A DNA stretch of 64,000 bases from Salisapilia sapeloensis CBS 127946 (Eukaryota; Protista; Oomycota), in NCBI GenBank assembly GCA_023334545.1, contig JAADVB010000008.1, positions 1 to 64,000 on the forward strand. The letters run 5' to 3'. Within the stretch, counting starts at the first letter, position 1. Every line of letters starts with the position of its first letter. Under the pieces are notes generated by a model. That model had not been told where the DNA came from and ran no database searches. It was given only the letters and a program-made list of their open reading frames with translations. Made by a program: the position numbers and the translations under genes. This document shows positions 1 to 53,920 of this stretch, in pieces.

Positions 1-303
1 TGCAATGGGTGCTACAAGTCTAGATCCTCTATAGGGATCGTCCACTGCAGTCGCACGAATAGCTTCAATGGTGGAGTGGGACAGGACGCAGCAGATGAAA
101 GGATGCGTAGGACCTGTATAAGGATTCAAGACAATGGCAAAAGCCATACACACAAAGGCTACACCAAAATAGGAAAAGACGATTGCTTTGGCGGTCATAA
201 CGAGAGAGATTATATGCACAACAATAACACAGTAAGCTTGCAAGCTGCGTCGTATTTGCCCATGAAAAGTATGTTGGTGAACTACAACCCAGTGCTTGTA
301 GCT
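1..303 (-). CDS. Possible exon of a hydrophobic membrane protein running off the window edge (or a gene relic)
   Basis: The minus-strand frame is open from an AG-like acceptor (cta at 304-306) to the window edge: SYKHWVVVHQHTFHGQIRRSLQAYCVIVVHIISLVMTAKAIVFSYFGVAFVCMAFAIVLNP... No family recognised and the upstream exon was not resolved. Confidence 0.2.
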
Positions 304-899
304 CTAGTATCAAAACGAATTGGTAAAGACGGCTGGTGATGGTACCGATGTTTACGCTTTCACATTGCATTACCGAGGTACTCAGACGACAACGACGACT
401 CGATGTGTTGTTGTCTCGCCGTTATTTCGCCTGCTCTTTATCTCATCGGGAGCAAGGACAAAAGAAGGTAGTGCATATCAAACCGGCAGTGTTTTGCAAT
501 TGATGCAGATACTGTACATACCAAAAGATACGCCAGGCCAAATGGACATTCGTATCCTTAAAGTCGACCAGATGAGTTCATACGGAAATTGAACGTCTTT
601 TGAGGATACTTTGATCACCGTTTTCTAAACACTGCATCTGTTAAGCAGGTGTAAATATCGGAGTGGAACGTGAAATAGGGTACGTGGATGGGAAGCTTAA
701 GTAAAGGCAGACGATATGTGTCAGTTCGAAAAACACCCTTTTGTTTATAAAAGTATAAAATATGCTTCGAATTTTCGCTAGTTCAATTAGCGAGATGGAC
801 ATCGTTAGATGACGTACCCTGTTTAGCGATTCGCGATATTGCTCAAGACATGCAACTCTACCATTTTAAATTTAGACCGCACGTGGATACCCCGCCAGA

Positions 900-47923: not shown

Positions 47924-48803
47924 AAGATCTTGAAGGCGACGGATCTACTCGCTTGATAGTTTATCAGGACAGCAAGAAGGTGGCGTAATATAGCGAGACG
48001 ATGGCGTTGCCGTTTCGACGAACGTTTGTCGACGGGATCTATTAGCCACACTTTATTGACAAAAAGAGGGTGTTTCAAGAAGATAACATCCAGGAAGAGG
48101 TACGAAAGGGGTTTTGGAACCAGGTTACCAGTGTTGTGCTATCTTTAGATCTGCTTTAAACGTAAGCGTTTATGTTTGTCCAGCAAACGAAGGGAATGGA
48201 GAGGTATCATAGATACTTTGGGTGATAGGAAGGTTTCAGTGGGATGAGCTTGTCGAGCATAGCGTCTCAAGTGACGATGAGACCAACGTGTATCAATTTA
48301 CACTGCGTGGATACAACAAGAGAAATTGTGTAGTGATTATGCTAAAGTGTACGACATTCAGACGCAACCAAGCCGCTAAATCGCATGCAATACTAGCTTG
48401 AGTCAAACAGCACGGTACAATCTATCAAGATAGCCACCAGTACGTCGAACTATTCCGAATCCAGCCTTGCACATACCACCTAGCAATCTTGTCGTACCAA
48501 TATGTACTTGATACCCACTCTCCATCCAAGACCACTACGTCATTCCCATAAAAAACGCATGTACATCCATCCATCTCCTCGTTTGTCCATTACTCTCCAC
48601 TACCCTCCTCCTTTGTCAAATCCGGATTAGCTTGCTTGTCGTATAGAGCATCGTCTCCTTGCAAAAGAAAAAGTATTTGTAAAAAATTGAATAAAAACAT
48701 TCAGACTGGATATAAAAAAACATATACAAAAGGGCGATCTGGAGAAGGCGAAGGACGCCATTACTCAATCCGCCAAGTCGAGGACACGTCGGACCTGGTA
48801 AAG

Positions 48804-51800
48804 ATGTCCAAGCCTCGAGTCGGACTTAAAAGTACGAGTGAACTGCCGGCGTATGACCGTTTCCAGCCGCACGCGTCATCCAATGTCGATCCGTCCAAGC
48901 TAAGCGTCGCGCAGCGACTTGTCCTGGAGAATCGACAACGTGCGGCCGAGCGCAGTCGACGACGCAATACGAAGCAAGTGATTGAATCCCTGAATGCCAG
49001 TCCGGTGGAAGTCGGGGCGCAGATATGGGTGCCGGATGAGGAACAAGTGTGGAGGGCCGTGGAAATCGTATCCTACGGACAGGACCAGGAAAAGGGCATG
49101 GTGCTTGTCGTACGTGGCGCCAAGGGGGAAGAAGAGGTCGACATGCGGGACCTCGGAGACTTGTACCGAGTCAACCCCCGCGTCGTCGATGACATGACGT
49201 CGCTCTACTACATCCATGAAGCCGGTATCTTGGCGAATCTAGAAGCGAGGTCCAAGCCTGGACAATTGCGACCGTATACACTCATGGCGAACGTCTTGAT
49301 TGCCGTGAATCCGTTGGTCAAGACGGTGGAACCCAAGGTGGAGGATTATATTCAGACGCAGATGGGGGACCGACCGCCGCATCCGTACGCGATCGCTGAA
49401 GTTGCGTTCCAGCAAATGGCTTTACGTACGCCTGCAACGTGTCAGAGTATCGTGATTTCAGGAGAATCTGGTGCAGGCAAGACGGAAACGAGTAAGATCG
49501 TCTTGCGCTACTTGACGTCTCGAGAGTACTTGACGACGCCCAAGGAGCCCAAGATCGAGAGCAAGCACGTTGCGACGGAACTAGACCAGCGTCTATGGGA
49601 CACGAATCCGATTCTGGAAGCCTTTGGTAACGCCAAGACCTTGCGCAACCACAACAGTAGTCGATTCGGTAAGTTCATGAAGCTGCAATTCCGTCCAGAA
49701 GACAATGCACTATGTGGTGCGTTCGTCGAAACGTATTTGCTGGAAAAGTTCCGTGTCGTGGCGCAGATTCCGGGCGAACGTAACTTCCACGTCTTCTACT
49801 TCCTCCTGTCTGGTGCTCAGCACAGTATGAAGCAGCAGTTGGGGCTCTCGAAAGCACAGGACTATGCTTACTTGAACCAAAGTGGCATGTACACGGATAA
49901 AAATGTGGACGATGAGCTCTTGTTTGATGAACTCGTGAGTGCACTCAAGACGGTCGGAATTGACCATGAGCTGCAGCAGAGCGTCTTCTCCGTCCTCGCG
50001 ATGTTGCTTCACCTTGGTAACATCCGTCTCGATAATAAGGAGACGGCGGAAGGTGATGCAGGAGAAGTCACGAGCGACGGACAGAAGGCATTGGTTCAAT
50101 GCGCTAAGCTCTTGGGTGTGGAAGACAACGAGTTGCAGCGTGTCATTACCGTTCGTGAGATCACGACGAGAGGAGAGACGTTTACCATTCGTCGTAGTGG
50201 CAAAGAAGGCTCATACGTGCGTGACGCGATTGCCAAGGCCGTGTACGACCAGCTCTTCAAGTGGATCTTGTACCGCATTAACATGAGCTTGGGCCATGGC
50301 GACAACTCGCTTCCGTTCATCGGTGTCTTAGATATCTTTGGCTTTGAAAGCTTTGAAGAGAACGACTTTGAGCAGCTTTTGATCAACTATGCGAATGAAG
50401 CCCTGCAAGCAACGTTCAACCAGCAAGTGTTCATCGCAGAGCAAGAGCTGTTTGAGCAGGAAGGCATTGAAGTCGGTGAGATTGCTTGGCCAGATAATCG
50501 CGAGTGCATCAACTTGATTTCGAATAAACCTAACGGTATCCTTCCGTTGTTGGATCAAGAAGCCAAGACGCCTCAACCAAGTGACGAGAAGTGGAATGCG
50601 ACGTTGCATAAGACCCATGCTGGTCACCCGCACTTTTTACCGCCGCACGAGAAAGATAAAAAGTATGAGTTCATCATTAAGCACTTTGCGACGCGTGTGC
50701 CGTACCAAGTGGGTAACTTTATCGACAAGAATAACGATACGATCCCGAAGGACTTGCAGGACTTTGTCATGTCGAGCAAAGCGGACTTGATTAAGGAACT
50801 CTTTTCGAGTAAAGTTGAAGTCGAGATGCTCCATGGAGGTGTCTCGGCTGCACCCACTTCGAATGTGAATAAGAAGAAGCAGACGGTAGGTGCCAAGTTC
50901 TGTGATCAGATGCAAGATCTTGTGGATACATTGAACGCGACGCGTTGTAACTTTATTCGGTGCATTAAGCCGAATCCGACGATGACAGCAGGTGAGTTCG
51001 ATCGAGGGTACGTTGTCGATCAATTGCGATCCACAGGTATGCTAGCAACGTGTGAGCTCCTCAAGGTCGGTCTCCCGACACGTGTGTCGTACGAAGAGAT
51101 TTGTCGGATTTACAAACCTGCGCTACCTCCGTCCGTGACACCCATGTTCGAGCCTTACAACAATCGAACGTTCACGGAAGCTGTCTTGTGGTCGTTCCGA
51201 GTCGACCCAGACGCGTATCGTCTCGGACGAACGAAAGTGTTCTTTAAAACAGGCAAGATTGCTCTCCTCGATGCTCTCTTGAAGGTCGATATGGAGAAGA
51301 TGGGACCGTGGATTGTCTCTCGACTGCGCAAGTGGCTTGCACGTCGTCGATGGAGATATGCGACGGCCAAGGTGTTGGCGCAGAAAGCGTTTTTGTGGCT
51401 CTTGGAACGTAGCCGACAGCGAAAGCGAGCGATCCTCAAGATGCAAGCTGCGGTCCGCATGTTCCGTGCGAAGAAACAGTTCCTCAAGTATCGAAGTGCG
51501 CACCGTAATCGTATGCGACGTCGCGCAGCGATCAAGAAGAAGATGAAGGGCGCTGTACGTGCTATCCAGGCTGCGAGATGGTTCAACGACGTCCTATCGA
51601 AGATTCGTGTCGAGAAACAGCAGCAGCATGAAGCTGCGAGGAAGATGCAGGCGGTGGTGCGTGGTAAATTCGGTCGGAAGACTGCCGCGAGGAAGAGGCA
51701 GGCGATGCAGGAAGCAGAGCTTCGCAAGCGTCTGGAGCAAGAGGAGCATGAGCGTAAGCAGAGCGCACAGCGTCGATGGAAGGCGTTGTACGCGACTGTC

Positions 51801-53171
51801 AAAGCGCAGAAACACTTTGTCACTCTCTTGCACACGGTCCGGAAGCGTCGCGAGGCGGTGGAAGAAGCGCGACGTGTAGCGGATGAACAGGAGCGTCAGC
51901 GTCTGCAGCAAGAGGAAGAGGCTCGTAAGCGTCGTGAGCAGGAGGAAGAGGAACGTCAGAGGCAGTTGGCTCTGAAGAAGAACGAGGCAGCGCGTAAGAT
52001 TCAGCGCGCTTTCCGTGCGAAACTCGCCAAGGAAGATGCCAAGCGAGAGATTGCTCGTTTAGCGGCGTTGCAGACAAATGAAGAGGCTCAGCGAGCGTTG
52101 GAAGAGGCGGAGAGAGCGGCGCAAGAGGCCGAGATGGCGAAGCAGATGGAGAGCGATGCGTGGAACCAGTACAATTCGTGGGAAGAAGCGCATAAGCAGG
52201 TGGAGCCAGAGCTTCCGGAGAAAACGGAGGAGGATGCGAAGCGGGAGGAAGAGCTGGATCAGGCTGGCAAGGATATCTTTGGCGAAGAGGATGAAGGCCA
52301 TGGTCCGATGATGTCTGCTGAAGATGAGAACCAGATTAACCCAGTGAACCGCAGTCAGGAGTTCCCGACTGGTCCGCCGATTCCGTACAAGGGAGGTATC
52401 TTGACGTGCACGATGCTCGGTCATCGGAAGCAGCAGGATGAGAACTGGGGAGATGAGTACACGGAGTACGTCCTCCGTTTGACGTGGAGTCGAGACATCT
52501 TGGAGCAGAGTCAGACGGCGTGGCTAGTCGGTGGTCGATACAATGACTTTAACGCGTTGCATCAAGAGCTGAAGGCTGCTGCGAGTGGCGTGCGAGGGAA
52601 GAGAGCGCCGTGGTTCCCTCGATTCCCGAAGCGTCATCCGTTCTCGAGCATGTTGGGCAAGAACCAGGAAGAAAAGTTCATTATCAAGCGCGAAAAGGAG
52701 CTGAATCGATACATGACGCAGGTGTTGACGCAGATGCCGGATGCACTCCAGAACATCCATATGGACCGCTTTTTGAATTTGACGTGGCGGACGCAAGATA
52801 TCTCGGAGAGAGAGGCGTACGCTGAAGCGAGGCGTCGGTGGGAAGAGGAGGAGCAGCAGGCGATGGCGAATGCGGCGGAAGCAGAGCCGTTGTCGGAGGA
52901 AGAGCTGCAGGAGGTCGAGACGTTGGTGTCGCAGCTGACGCAAAAGGTGATCTATGCAGCGGGAGACGTGCGTCAGGACACGGAGCTGCAGGAGATGATT
53001 CACGCAGTCAAGGTGCTGCAGCCGAGGGTGAAGAAGACGGCGGATATCGGCGGACATGCGAATGTGGAGCTGATTCCGTTGGCGATGCAGCTGCAGGATG
53101 ACATTTCGGAGGCGTTTAGTCAGTACAATGATACGTTGCTGGCGCTACGTCTCGGACAGGACTTAAGCTGA
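48804..53171 (+). CDS. Myosin (myosin-VI-related) with IQ/SAH lever, PX domain and C-terminal GAT-like helical bundle
   Basis: Motor motifs GESGAGKT, NSSRFGK, DIFGFE and FIRCIKPN. IQ motifs and an E/R/K-rich helix follow. PX signature RYNDFNALHQELK...FPRFPK...REKELNRYMTQVL. Intronless; start placed at MSKPRVG. Confidence 0.95.
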   Translation: MSKPRVGLKSTSELPAYDRFQPHASSNVDPSKLSVAQRLVLENRQRAAERSRRRNTKQVIESLNASPVEVGAQIWVPDEEQVWRAVEIVSYGQDQEKGMVLVVRGAKGEEEVDMRDLGDLYRVNPRVVDDMTSLYYIHEAGILANLEARSKPGQLRPYTLMANVLIAVNPLVKTVEPKVEDYIQTQMGDRPPHPYAIAEVAFQQMALRTPATCQSIVISGESGAGKTETSKIVLRYLTSREYLTTPKEPKIESKHVATELDQRLWDTNPILEAFGNAKTLRNHNSSRFGKFMKLQFRPEDNALCGAFVETYLLEKFRVVAQIPGERNFHVFYFLLSGAQHSMKQQLGLSKAQDYAYLNQSGMYTDKNVDDELLFDELVSALKTVGIDHELQQSVFSVLAMLLHLGNIRLDNKETAEGDAGEVTSDGQKALVQCAKLLGVEDNELQRVITVREITTRGETFTIRRSGKEGSYVRDAIAKAVYDQLFKWILYRINMSLGHGDNSLPFIGVLDIFGFESFEENDFEQLLINYANEALQATFNQQVFIAEQELFEQEGIEVGEIAWPDNRECINLISNKPNGILPLLDQEAKTPQPSDEKWNATLHKTHAGHPHFLPPHEKDKKYEFIIKHFATRVPYQVGNFIDKNNDTIPKDLQDFVMSSKADLIKELFSSKVEVEMLHGGVSAAPTSNVNKKKQTVGAKFCDQMQDLVDTLNATRCNFIRCIKPNPTMTAGEFDRGYVVDQLRSTGMLATCELLKVGLPTRVSYEEICRIYKPALPPSVTPMFEPYNNRTFTEAVLWSFRVDPDAYRLGRTKVFFKTGKIALLDALLKVDMEKMGPWIVSRLRKWLARRRWRYATAKVLAQKAFLWLLERSRQRKRAILKMQAAVRMFRAKKQFLKYRSAHRNRMRRRAAIKKKMKGAVRAIQAARWFNDVLSKIRVEKQQQHEAARKMQAVVRGKFGRKTAARKRQAMQEAELRKRLEQEEHERKQSAQRRWKALYATVKAQKHFVTLLHTVRKRREAVEEARRVADEQERQRLQQEEEARKRREQEEEERQRQLALKKNEAARKIQRAFRAKLAKEDAKREIARLAALQTNEEAQRALEEAERAAQEAEMAKQMESDAWNQYNSWEEAHKQVEPELPEKTEEDAKREEELDQAGKDIFGEEDEGHGPMMSAEDENQINPVNRSQEFPTGPPIPYKGGILTCTMLGHRKQQDENWGDEYTEYVLRLTWSRDILEQSQTAWLVGGRYNDFNALHQELKAAASGVRGKRAPWFPRFPKRHPFSSMLGKNQEEKFIIKREKELNRYMTQVLTQMPDALQNIHMDRFLNLTWRTQDISEREAYAEARRRWEEEEQQAMANAAEAEPLSEEELQEVETLVSQLTQKVIYAAGDVRQDTELQEMIHAVKVLQPRVKKTADIGGHANVELIPLAMQLQDDISEAFSQYNDTLLALRLGQDLS

Positions 53172-53215
53172 TTTGTTTTCAATGGAAGGAACATGAATAA
53201 ATTTTCTTTTTCTCG

Positions 53216-53920
53216 TTACGGTTTAAAGTGTTTTGCGACGAGGAAGAGCTCGGAGGATTCCGGACGTGATGATGAAGGCTTGATACCTTTGACGCTTTCG
53301 AAGTGTTCCTTGAGATGAGATCGGAACGACTCGGAGTCTTCGCCTTTGAGGATCTTGGTGGCAAAGTGTCCGCCTGGAGCTAGGAAGAGGTGAGCCATCT
53401 GAAGCGCGTTGTGGCATAGTCGGAGCTGAGCTTGACTGTCTCGGAAAGTATTGCCGGAAAAGGATGGAGCCATGTCGCTTAAGAGGACATTTACCTTCCG
53501 GTGACCTAGTAGTCTATCGATCTCGTCGCGGATGGCGCGCTGACGGAAGTCTCCTACGACGACGCCAGCTCCTTCGATGCTTTCCATGTGGAGTAAGTCG
53601 ACGGCGACGACTTTGACGCCGTCTTTGGTGTCGTTATACTTTTTGCCTGTCGAACTCTCGACTGCTATCTGTGTCCAGCCGCCAGGAGCAGCACCTAGAT
53701 CGAGTACAAGGTCATTCTTCTTGATGATCTGATGCTTTTGGTTCAGTTCTCGCAGCTTGAGCGCCGCACGAGACCGTAGACCTTCGCGTTTGGCCTGTTT
53801 GACAGCCGGATCACGCCATTGACGACGTACCCATCGAGCACTGTTGCTCGACTTGCCTTTGAGACTCCGCTTTTCGCGTAGAATTCCAGTGGTTTGGATC
53901 ACGCACTGCCGAAATGACAT
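53216..53920 (-). CDS. MRM2: FtsJ/RrmJ rRNA 2'-O-methyltransferase, mitochondrial MRM2-like
   Basis: RSRAALKLREL, VLDLGAAPGGWTQ, LSDMAP, TKILKG and SRPESSELFL. Start placed at MSFRQC. Confidence 0.88.
   Translation of the reverse strand: MSFRQCVIQTTGILREKRSLKGKSSNSARWVRRQWRDPAVKQAKREGLRSRAALKLRELNQKHQIIKKNDLVLDLGAAPGGWTQIAVESSTGKKYNDTKDGVKVVAVDLLHMESIEGAGVVVGDFRQRAIRDEIDRLLGHRKVNVLLSDMAPSFSGNTFRDSQAQLRLCHNALQMAHLFLAPGGHFATKILKGEDSESFRSHLKEHFESVKGIKPSSSRPESSELFLVAKHFKP

Follow-up and report, generated by a model that had tools for sequence, protein, structure and literature searches.

The window analysed, 64,000 nucleotides from Salisapilia sapeloensis CBS 127946 (assembly GCA_023334545.1, contig JAADVB010000008.1, positions 1 to 64,000), contains an intronless gene for a class XXX (PX-tail) oomycete myosin, the neck of which resembles that of myosin VI. 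Residues 827-874 of this myosin are probably a true homologue of insert-2, the reverse gear of myosin VI, and act as such in a motor that lacks insert-1. The homology of the segment to insert-2 is, taken by itself, highly likely. Because of this homology, the predicted geometry of the lever and membership in a clade with class VI, movement towards the minus ends of actin filaments is the most likely reading of the motor, and is held with moderate confidence by analogy with myosin VI.

Both inserts have been defined in myosin VI (PMC2635068, PMC5762158), where insert-2 (residues 761-814, followed by a single IQ motif) is described as turning the lever by ~120 degrees, as holding a structural calmodulin and as the one element that determines reversal (PMC2635068, PMC5762158). 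In the available text of two sources, myosin VI is stated to be the only minus-end-directed myosin and insert-2 to be absent from all other classes (PMC2635068, PMC10853514). Kollmar & Muhlhausen confine class 6 to Holozoa.

Sequence evidence for insert-2

Insert-2 is characterised by ~50 inserted residues that separate the last converter helix from the first IQ motif, and this neck has such a stretch. HMMER aligned converter and neck to myosin VI (2bki/8w41) through residue 832 with gaps of only 1 + 3 positions, and placed the 57 residues from G817+1 to the IQ motif at 875 on myosin VI 762-814. Smith-Waterman alignment of the neck with a vertebrate-type myosin VI neck scored 81, against 29.3 +/- 5.5 for 1000 composition-preserving shuffles, none of which reached 81 (0/1000). 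The almost gapless alignment to myosin VI given in the preliminary description was thus upheld.

The proximal part of the segment (827-843) aligns to myosin VI, and past it only myosin VI chains stay structurally aligned. The distal part (844-874) aligns to WLICSRWKKVQW..SLSVIKLKNKIKYR of myosin VI, with which it shares the hydrophobic and basic pattern WLxxxRW(K/R)...L. The IQ motif at 875-893 aligns to ACIKMQKTIRMWLCKRR, with a spacing equal to that of the single IQ of myosin VI. Individual positions also separate the two types of neck: at G+1 class VI and the stramenopile group have Lys where conventional myosins have Gln; at G+9 they have a hydrophobic residue, where 21/26 conventional myosins have Arg; and at G+12 they have Asp, which conventional myosins never have.

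When the 83 post-converter residues were searched as a single sequence against 177,635 PDB sequences, the top three matches were all myosin VI (E 0.3-0.8), which alone is not significant. As this was insufficient, a profile (A1; 83 positions of the post-converter neck, without the converter) was built from 32 stramenopile myosins. Searched against the same sequences, A1 found 2bki, 3gn4 and 8w41, which hold insert-2 and the IQ motif, at E 2.3e-4 to 9e-4, with positions 1-78 in register with myosin VI residues 761-834. No other PDB chains were in register, the next match being the IQ motif of myosin Ic alone (E 0.013). Profile-profile comparison of A1 with A3, made from the necks of 38 animal myosin VI sequences, gave a probability of 96.9% and E 2e-10 over 76 columns (hhalign).

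A hidden Markov model (HMM) of the full class VI neck was rejected as a discriminator, as it gave class V necks up to 28.7 bits compared with 25-41 bits for class XXX; it discriminates poorly because the shared converter helix and IQ motif dominate the score. It was replaced by an HMM of the animal insert-2 core only (A3 columns 11-56). On this core HMM, necks of class XXX scored 7.1-11.9 bits (paralogue A) and 4.9-16.6 bits (paralogue B), and those of the 'VI-like' protist myosins described below about 5-37 bits, while 37 conventional necks (V/XI, VII-like, II) scored ≤ 4.4 bits and were mostly negative. The profile, hhalign and core HMM results carry the likeness beyond that generic to IQ motifs and basic helices, by modest margins.

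Predicted path of the lever

Two template-free AlphaFold2 (AF2) models were made from alignments of stramenopile homologues only, with no class VI sequences in the input. In the converter-neck model (protein 696-906; predicted local distance difference test (pLDDT) 84) the last converter helix, 819-826, is followed by a break at K827-V828-D829 and by one long helix from M830. The motor+neck model (protein 60-907; pLDDT 86.4, predicted template modelling score (pTM) 0.80) has the same break. By DSSP it lies at model residues 132-134 and 768-770, respectively.

Comparison of the converter-neck model with the PDB (VIA) placed myosin VI at all of ranks 1-20 (Z 7.8-11.4), aligned to model residues 150-192. 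The best case with a low root-mean-square deviation (rmsd) was 6bnw (model 62..161, 92 residues, 2.7 Å); 8w41 aligned over model 1..192. Other myosins appeared from rank 21, and their low-rmsd alignments end with the converter, at model 135-141. The top 24 Foldseek matches were likewise all myosin VI. The Swiss-Prot set of the AlphaFold database (AFDB) served as the cross-class control, because its full-length predictions cover every reviewed myosin class. Its top six matches were the six reviewed MYO6 entries (template modelling (TM) score 0.51-0.56, aligned through residues 826-832), compared with TM ≤ 0.36 and rmsd 13-24 Å for every other class (I, II, III, V and IX and the Arabidopsis myosins).

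For the motor+neck model, the four best PDB matches were myosin VI structures of motor domain, insert-2 and calmodulin (MD-insert2-CaM), aligned to model 792-813 (chain 794-815). Among the structures, 2vas matched model 12..813 on chain 4..815 (Z 46.2), 2x51 superposed to chain residue 815, and 4pjj superposed over 708 residues at 3.2 Å, reaching model 792 (chain 794). All non-VI myosins stop at model 766-780, including the lever-containing 1w7j, 8of8, 1sr6 and 5i0i. Since only myosin VI superposes beyond the converter in both models, the lever is predicted to run as in myosin VI, whether judged against the converter or against the whole motor. The helix break and the redirection of the lever along the converter are both present in the two models, as predictions. 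The preliminary description had proposed AlphaFold with calmodulin as a check of the lever angle; a break at KVD and a myosin VI path, not a straight lever, were found, although in models of the myosin chain alone, without calmodulin.

The gear may be envisaged as follows. The last converter helix would end at K827-V828-D829, and the new helix from M830 would run back along the converter and redirect the lever as in myosin VI. The distal amphipathic part, W844-L867, would bind a calmodulin-type light chain, and the canonical IQ motif would follow at 875-893 with myosin VI spacing. Further 'RW-helix + IQ' modules and a Glu/Arg/Lys-rich helix would lengthen the lever and may bind several light chains, while the PX domain, and possibly a GAT-like end, would attach the motor to phosphoinositide-marked membranes.

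Insert-1 is missing

Insert-1, which lies near switch I in myosin VI (residues 278-303), was looked for by anchor spacing and by PDB alignment, and is not present. The anchors ERNxHxFY and LHLGN are 69 residues apart, as they are at the median in conventional myosins (69); in true class VI the distance is 92-96. The best PDB sequence match of residues 1-949 was to insert-1-deleted myosin VI constructs, in a single stretch of 505 bits (myosin Va, 455 bits). The short insert-1 region reported in the preliminary description is therefore confirmed. Without insert-1, nucleotide exchange would be expected to be faster and gating between heads weaker than in myosin VI. Insert-1-deleted myosin VI is still minus-end-directed.

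Spread among myosins and phylogeny

The insert-2 feature is not a peculiarity of one myosin, as it had first seemed. Both oomycete PX-myosin paralogues carry it almost without variation, and it occurs in looser form in many other stramenopile myosins. In paralogue A, GKIALLDALLKVDMKKMGPWIVARLRKWLARRRWRYAxAK is almost invariant across oomycetes; paralogue B has the form ..KINWAVDGPxIVxRMKLWLARRRWRV.., and the looser form is found in many stramenopile myosins without PX.

Brown-algal and other ochrophyte relatives with a PH tail (P0059-P0088) keep only GPWIFxRL, after which an Ala/Glu-rich helix replaces the WLxRRRW helix and the IQ motif. This exchange of the distal part and IQ motif indicates that the insert-2-like module can be remodelled, and light-chain binding at the gear may have been lost in these proteins. 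A further group, oomycete myosins of ~1300 amino acids without PX (P0092-P0120), lies inside the stramenopile clade and has a much more divergent neck, ..LLTP....L..ML.YLRKKRWI.VATK.., which scored < 4 bits on the core HMM.

The motor domain was approached from the other side by searching the Aplysia myosin VI motor, without its neck, against 1.84 billion cluster representatives. True class VI was followed by about 40 'VI-like' proteins (P0253-P0301; 500-670 bits, 44-48% identity to the Aplysia motor), including those of Diphylleia rotans and Rigifila ramosa (CRuMs), Cyanophora paradoxa (glaucophyte), Salpingoeca urceolata (choanoflagellate) and MMETSP protists. Their necks read GKLAFLEEL..(I/V)VxKV(R/K)KWLARKR(F/W)(R/K)xAIW, most without a clear canonical IQ motif after the insert. 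They appear to lack insert-1, since most align in two pieces that are split at the insert-1 site. Conventional V/XI-type motors followed from about 530 bits down (about 490-530), and oomycete class XXX motors scored 460-479.

A maximum-likelihood tree was inferred from 79 motor domains, sampled via two similarity searches, with the neck excluded (676 columns, LG+C20+F+G4; unrooted). One branch, with ultrafast bootstrap (UFBoot) 100 and Shimodaira-Hasegawa-like approximate likelihood ratio (SH-aLRT) 99, joins class VI, the VI-like proteins and all of the stramenopile group, with class XXX A and B and the brown-algal forms among it, and sets them apart from class II, V/XI-like and VII-like myosins. 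This split was also recovered, with a support of 96, in a quick tree of 111 rows. In the 79-motor tree the Salisapilia motor does not nest inside the class VI clade: class VI proteins form a clade of their own (100/100), and the query sits with the oomycete PX-myosins (one 100/100 clade) in the stramenopile clade (100/100), which is distinct from it and meets class VI and the VI-like group one level up. The comparison with classes VI and XXX proposed in the preliminary description has thus joined the two on motors alone (100/99). Neck type maps on the class VI/VI-like/stramenopile clade with few exceptions. The reverse-gear segment marks a clade of class VI, the 'VI-like' protist myosins and class XXX with its stramenopile relatives.

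A repeated lever module

The distal part of the segment recurs along the lever. Residues 841-877 align locally with 984-1020 at a score of 76, which 0/500 shuffles reached (34 +/- 5). In orthologues (P0002-P0023) there are three copies of K(R/K)RW(K/R)xA...AQ..F..L, the first two each followed by an IQ motif. The lever can be described as repeated 'helix + IQ' units at 51333-51863, of which the middle copy is degenerate in the Salisapilia protein. Because it is repeated further along the lever, the distal half, which resembles a calmodulin site, is as judged from sequence a general lever-building and putative light-chain-binding module of class XXX and not a unique part of the gear. The gear-specific remainder is therefore the proximal turn and its position against the converter.

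Weighing the readings

Several observations count against a working reverse gear at residues 827-874. AF2 was trained on structures that included myosin VI, so that the predicted geometry may be echoed from sequence similarity; the models were built without calmodulin, and pLDDT at the kink is 72-85. The proximal, redirecting part is the least similar to myosin VI (KVDMEKMGPW compared with KSDPDHLAE), with Gly-Pro inside the predicted helix, and IVSRLRKWLAR occupies the place of a conventional IQ1 and fits IQxxxRGxxxR at positions 1, 6 and 11. The full-neck HMM failed to split class XXX from some class V necks, and the margins of the core HMM are modest (class XXX 5-17 bits, conventional ≤ 4.4). 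The reciprocal core HMM, from the oomycete core to animal VI, separates weakly: animal VI had a median of 5.2 and a minimum of -3.2, overlapping the controls (median -0.7, conventional necks up to 4.0). From the side of myosin VI, class XXX motors scored no higher than those of XI/V, so the link to class VI rests on the tree and the neck; and the tree leaves out class I and many protist classes.

Alternatively, residues 827-874 might be a true insert-2 homologue in a protein that is no reversed transporter. The lever would then take another angle, through differences in the proximal part, the light chains or the long repeated lever, leaving a motor that moves to the plus end or serves chiefly to anchor or tether PX-bound membranes. 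It is in the proximal part that the protein departs furthest from myosin VI, it has no insert-1, the tuner of nucleotide gating in myosin VI, and the brown-algal relatives have remodelled the module down to GPWIFxRL. However, the predicted geometry superposes through the whole insert (2vas and 2x51 to 815; 4pjj at 3.2 Å to 794), and a review names insert-2 as the sole determinant of direction in myosin VI (PMC2635068). Such a homologous insert without reversal is regarded as unlikely.

A conventional straight lever, with a plus-end motor, is quite improbable. It would make IVSRLRKWLARRRW a degenerate first IQ motif followed by more IQ-like sites, and the likeness to myosin VI would be that of basic amphipathic calmodulin-binding helices. 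I837-V838 does lie 20-21 residues after the G of FFxxG, as in IQ1 of myosin V, with the fit to IQxxxRGxxxR (I1, R6, R11) noted above, and, like light-chain sites, the distal motif is repeated down the lever. On the full-neck class VI HMM, class V necks score as high as 28.7 bits, and the available text of Odronitz & Kollmar gives class XXX 'two IQ motifs' and no insert (PMC2375034). Nevertheless, both AF2 models break at KVD and conventional levers from the PDB and AFDB do not superpose beyond the converter. The best Pfam IQ stretch is 875-893 and not 837-850, the profile match stays in register over all 76-78 columns and so extends beyond the IQ motif, conventional necks reach ≤ 4.4 bits on the core HMM, and in the motor-only tree the protein falls within the clade holding class VI.

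A chance or compositional match, with neither common ancestry nor common structure, is very unlikely: the segment has a high content of R, K, W and L and the single-sequence neck-only search gave E 0.3-0.8, but 0/1000 composition-keeping shuffles reached its score, the profile and hhalign gave E 2e-4 and E 2e-10, the motif is conserved in distant lineages and the independent motor-domain tree agrees.

The reading of residues 827-874 as insert-2 is favoured. Every computational test applied (profile searches, profile-profile comparison, two AF2 models set against the PDB and AFDB, and a motor-only phylogeny) agrees with the preliminary description in so far as it proposed an insert-2 of myosin VI type without insert-1; what it predicted of movement and gating is retained, like light-chain binding and an endosomal role, as inference.

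Gene, transcript and feature map

The myosin is encoded by a single long open reading frame (48636..53171, + strand, 1511 codons). The peptide quoted in the preliminary description, KVFFKTGKIALLDALLKVDMEKMGPWIVSRLRKWLARRRWRY...RAILKMQAAVRM, is present in this frame at 51234-51482, although its start had been put at 51235, one base off: the K of KVFF is at nt 51234, and reading from 51235 gives a wrong frame with a stop. In the protein, KVFFKTG (from nt 51234) begins at residue 811, and RAILKMQAAVRM corresponds to residues 875-886.

Two runs with an RNA label, itself a guess, gave contigs that align to the window without joints and with 0 differences. One of them covers 48718-53176, starting 86 nt ahead of the ATG and running 5 nt beyond the stop codon; since it matches without differences or joints, the gene is intronless and very probably transcribed. 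The end of this contig gives the assembled transcript a very short 3' end, and the next contig downstream begins at 53226.

The nearest database proteins are the PX-domain myosins of Phytophthora, Lagenidium, Pythium, Saprolegnia, Aphanomyces and Albugo (60-70% identity). Public names of the orthologues (P0007, P0036, P0048) are misleading: 'Vacuolar protein sorting-associated protein 16' and 'Calmodulin' are in use, and paralogue B of Phytophthora ramorum is called 'Myosin-6'. The models named 'Calmodulin' also hold SAP-type domains and may be gene fusions.

The features of the gene are listed in Table 1. Pfam found three IQ stretches within the neck.

Table 1. Features of the Salisapilia class XXX myosin gene (positions in the window)
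Feature	Position	Strand	Protein residues	Basis
Myosin coding sequence	48804..53171	+	1455 aa + stop	First ATG at 48804; no intron (open reading frame list, translation, contig match)
N-terminal SH3-like beta barrel	49020..49142	+	73-113	Four beta strands in AF2 motor+neck model
Myosin motor domain	49185..51248	+	128-815	Pfam Myosin_head, E 3.3e-205
Insert-1 site, no insert (YLNQSGMYTDKNVDD)	49869..49913	+		Anchor spacing; single-stretch alignment to delta-insert-1 constructs
Last converter helix, IALLDALL	51258..51281	+	819-826	Helix in both AF2 models
Proximal insert-2-like part, KVDMEKMGPWIVSRLRK	51282..51332	+	827-843	KVD helix break, then predicted start of redirected helix
Distal insert-2-like part, WLARRRWRYATAKVLAQKAFLWLLERSRQRK; predicted calmodulin/light-chain site	51333..51425	+	844-874	
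First canonical IQ motif, RAILKMQAAVRMFRAKKQF	51426..51482	+	875-893	Best Pfam IQ stretch
Further IQ motif, KMQAVVRGKFGRK	51633..51689	+	944-962	Sequence reading; kept in orthologues
Repeat of distal insert-2-like helix, RKQSAQRRWKALYATVKAQKHFVTLLHTVRKRREAV	51753..51863	+	984-1020	Local alignment to 841-877
IQ motif in Glu/Arg/Lys-rich helical region	51987..52043	+	1062-1080	Sequence and orthologue alignment
PX domain	52506..52778	+	1235-1325	Pfam PX, E 2.6e-10, 41.1 bits (cut-off 21.6)
GAT-like C-terminal helices, sub-threshold	52965..53138	+	1388-1445	Pfam GAT, E 6.6e-5, 23.5 bits (cut-off 31)

The sub-threshold GAT match in the last ~60 residues hints at ubiquitin or adaptor binding, and is a lead only. 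Proteins known to contain a GAT domain include the GGA proteins and TOM1, a partner of myosin VI (PMC6673701); the GAT-like end is reminiscent of the myosin VI-TOM1 partnership.

Relation to known myosins

The likeness to class VI (MYO6, Drosophila 95F, C. elegans SPE-15, HUM-8) comprises a post-converter segment at the same position and of a length within 4 residues, a helix break at K-x-D, the motif (L/I)VxxxxKWLxxxRW(K/R), an IQ motif at equal spacing, the predicted lever path, the motor clade and the best PDB sequence match. In contrast to class VI, the Salisapilia myosin has no insert-1, its motor is only about 40% identical, its lever, extended by repeats of the RW-helix + IQ module, is much longer, and its proximal insert has Gly-Pro where myosin VI has an Asp-Pro-Asp turn. 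The tails also differ. All full-length class VI matches listed have PF21521/PF16521 tails; neither family was found by Pfam in this protein, for which Myosin_head, IQ, PX and sub-threshold GAT were the only matches, and the tail consists of PX and the GAT-like end.

The gene is a member of class XXX and orthologous to that of Phytophthora, with an SH3-like N-terminus, motor, IQ motifs, a coiled-coil/helical region and PX. The available text of Odronitz & Kollmar 2007 (PMC2375034) describes the class as an SH3-like N-terminus, two IQ motifs, coiled coil and PX, and that of Sebe-Pedros 2014 (PMC3942036) agrees with the assignment. In the text available of both, class XXX is described without an insert-2-like segment, reversed direction or link to class VI (PMC2375034, PMC3942036).

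An insert-2-like segment outside animals was proposed before for PfMyoJ and PfMyoK, apicomplexan 'class VI-like' myosins of class XXIII, whose AlphaFold-3 levers were placed with those of minus-end motors (PMC13448217). These differ from the Salisapilia protein in lineage, class and tail, and no apicomplexan sequence was identified by name in the tree. The 'VI-like' myosins of Diphylleia, Rigifila, Cyanophora and Salpingoeca urceolata (P0257-P0280) share the insert-2-like neck, the apparent lack of insert-1 and the clade; their tails are different, and their motors are nearer to class VI (44-48%, 500-670 bits) than are those of class XXX (about 40%, 460-479 bits).

No literature linking Phytophthora, oomycete or stramenopile myosins with myosin VI or a reverse gear was found in the library searched, which is incomplete, so that an earlier statement (CyMoBase, Foth 2006) is possible. 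What appears to be new is the extension of insert-2-like segments to class XXX and many stramenopile myosins, the grouping of these with class VI, and the duplication of the distal module.

In a broader and more tentative reading, the reverse gear would be an ancestral mark of a large and ancient clade and no invention of holozoan class VI. To this clade would belong class VI, the VI-like myosins of CRuMs, glaucophytes and choanoflagellates, and class XXX together with several more stramenopile classes. Class XXX might then have duplicated the calmodulin-binding half of the gear into a long lever, and with its PX/GAT-like tail the protein could be an endosomal counterpart of myosin VI. If this were true, a large share of oomycete and protist myosins would be minus-end-directed.

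Lack of insert-1, repetition of the gear-distal module and loss of the distal half in brown algae offer natural variants in which to study how gear, gating and lever length combine. A working reverse gear in class XXX and its relatives would mean that retrograde actin transport is widespread in protists, including the oomycetes, major pathogens of plants and animals, and that reversal of direction originated far earlier in eukaryote evolution.

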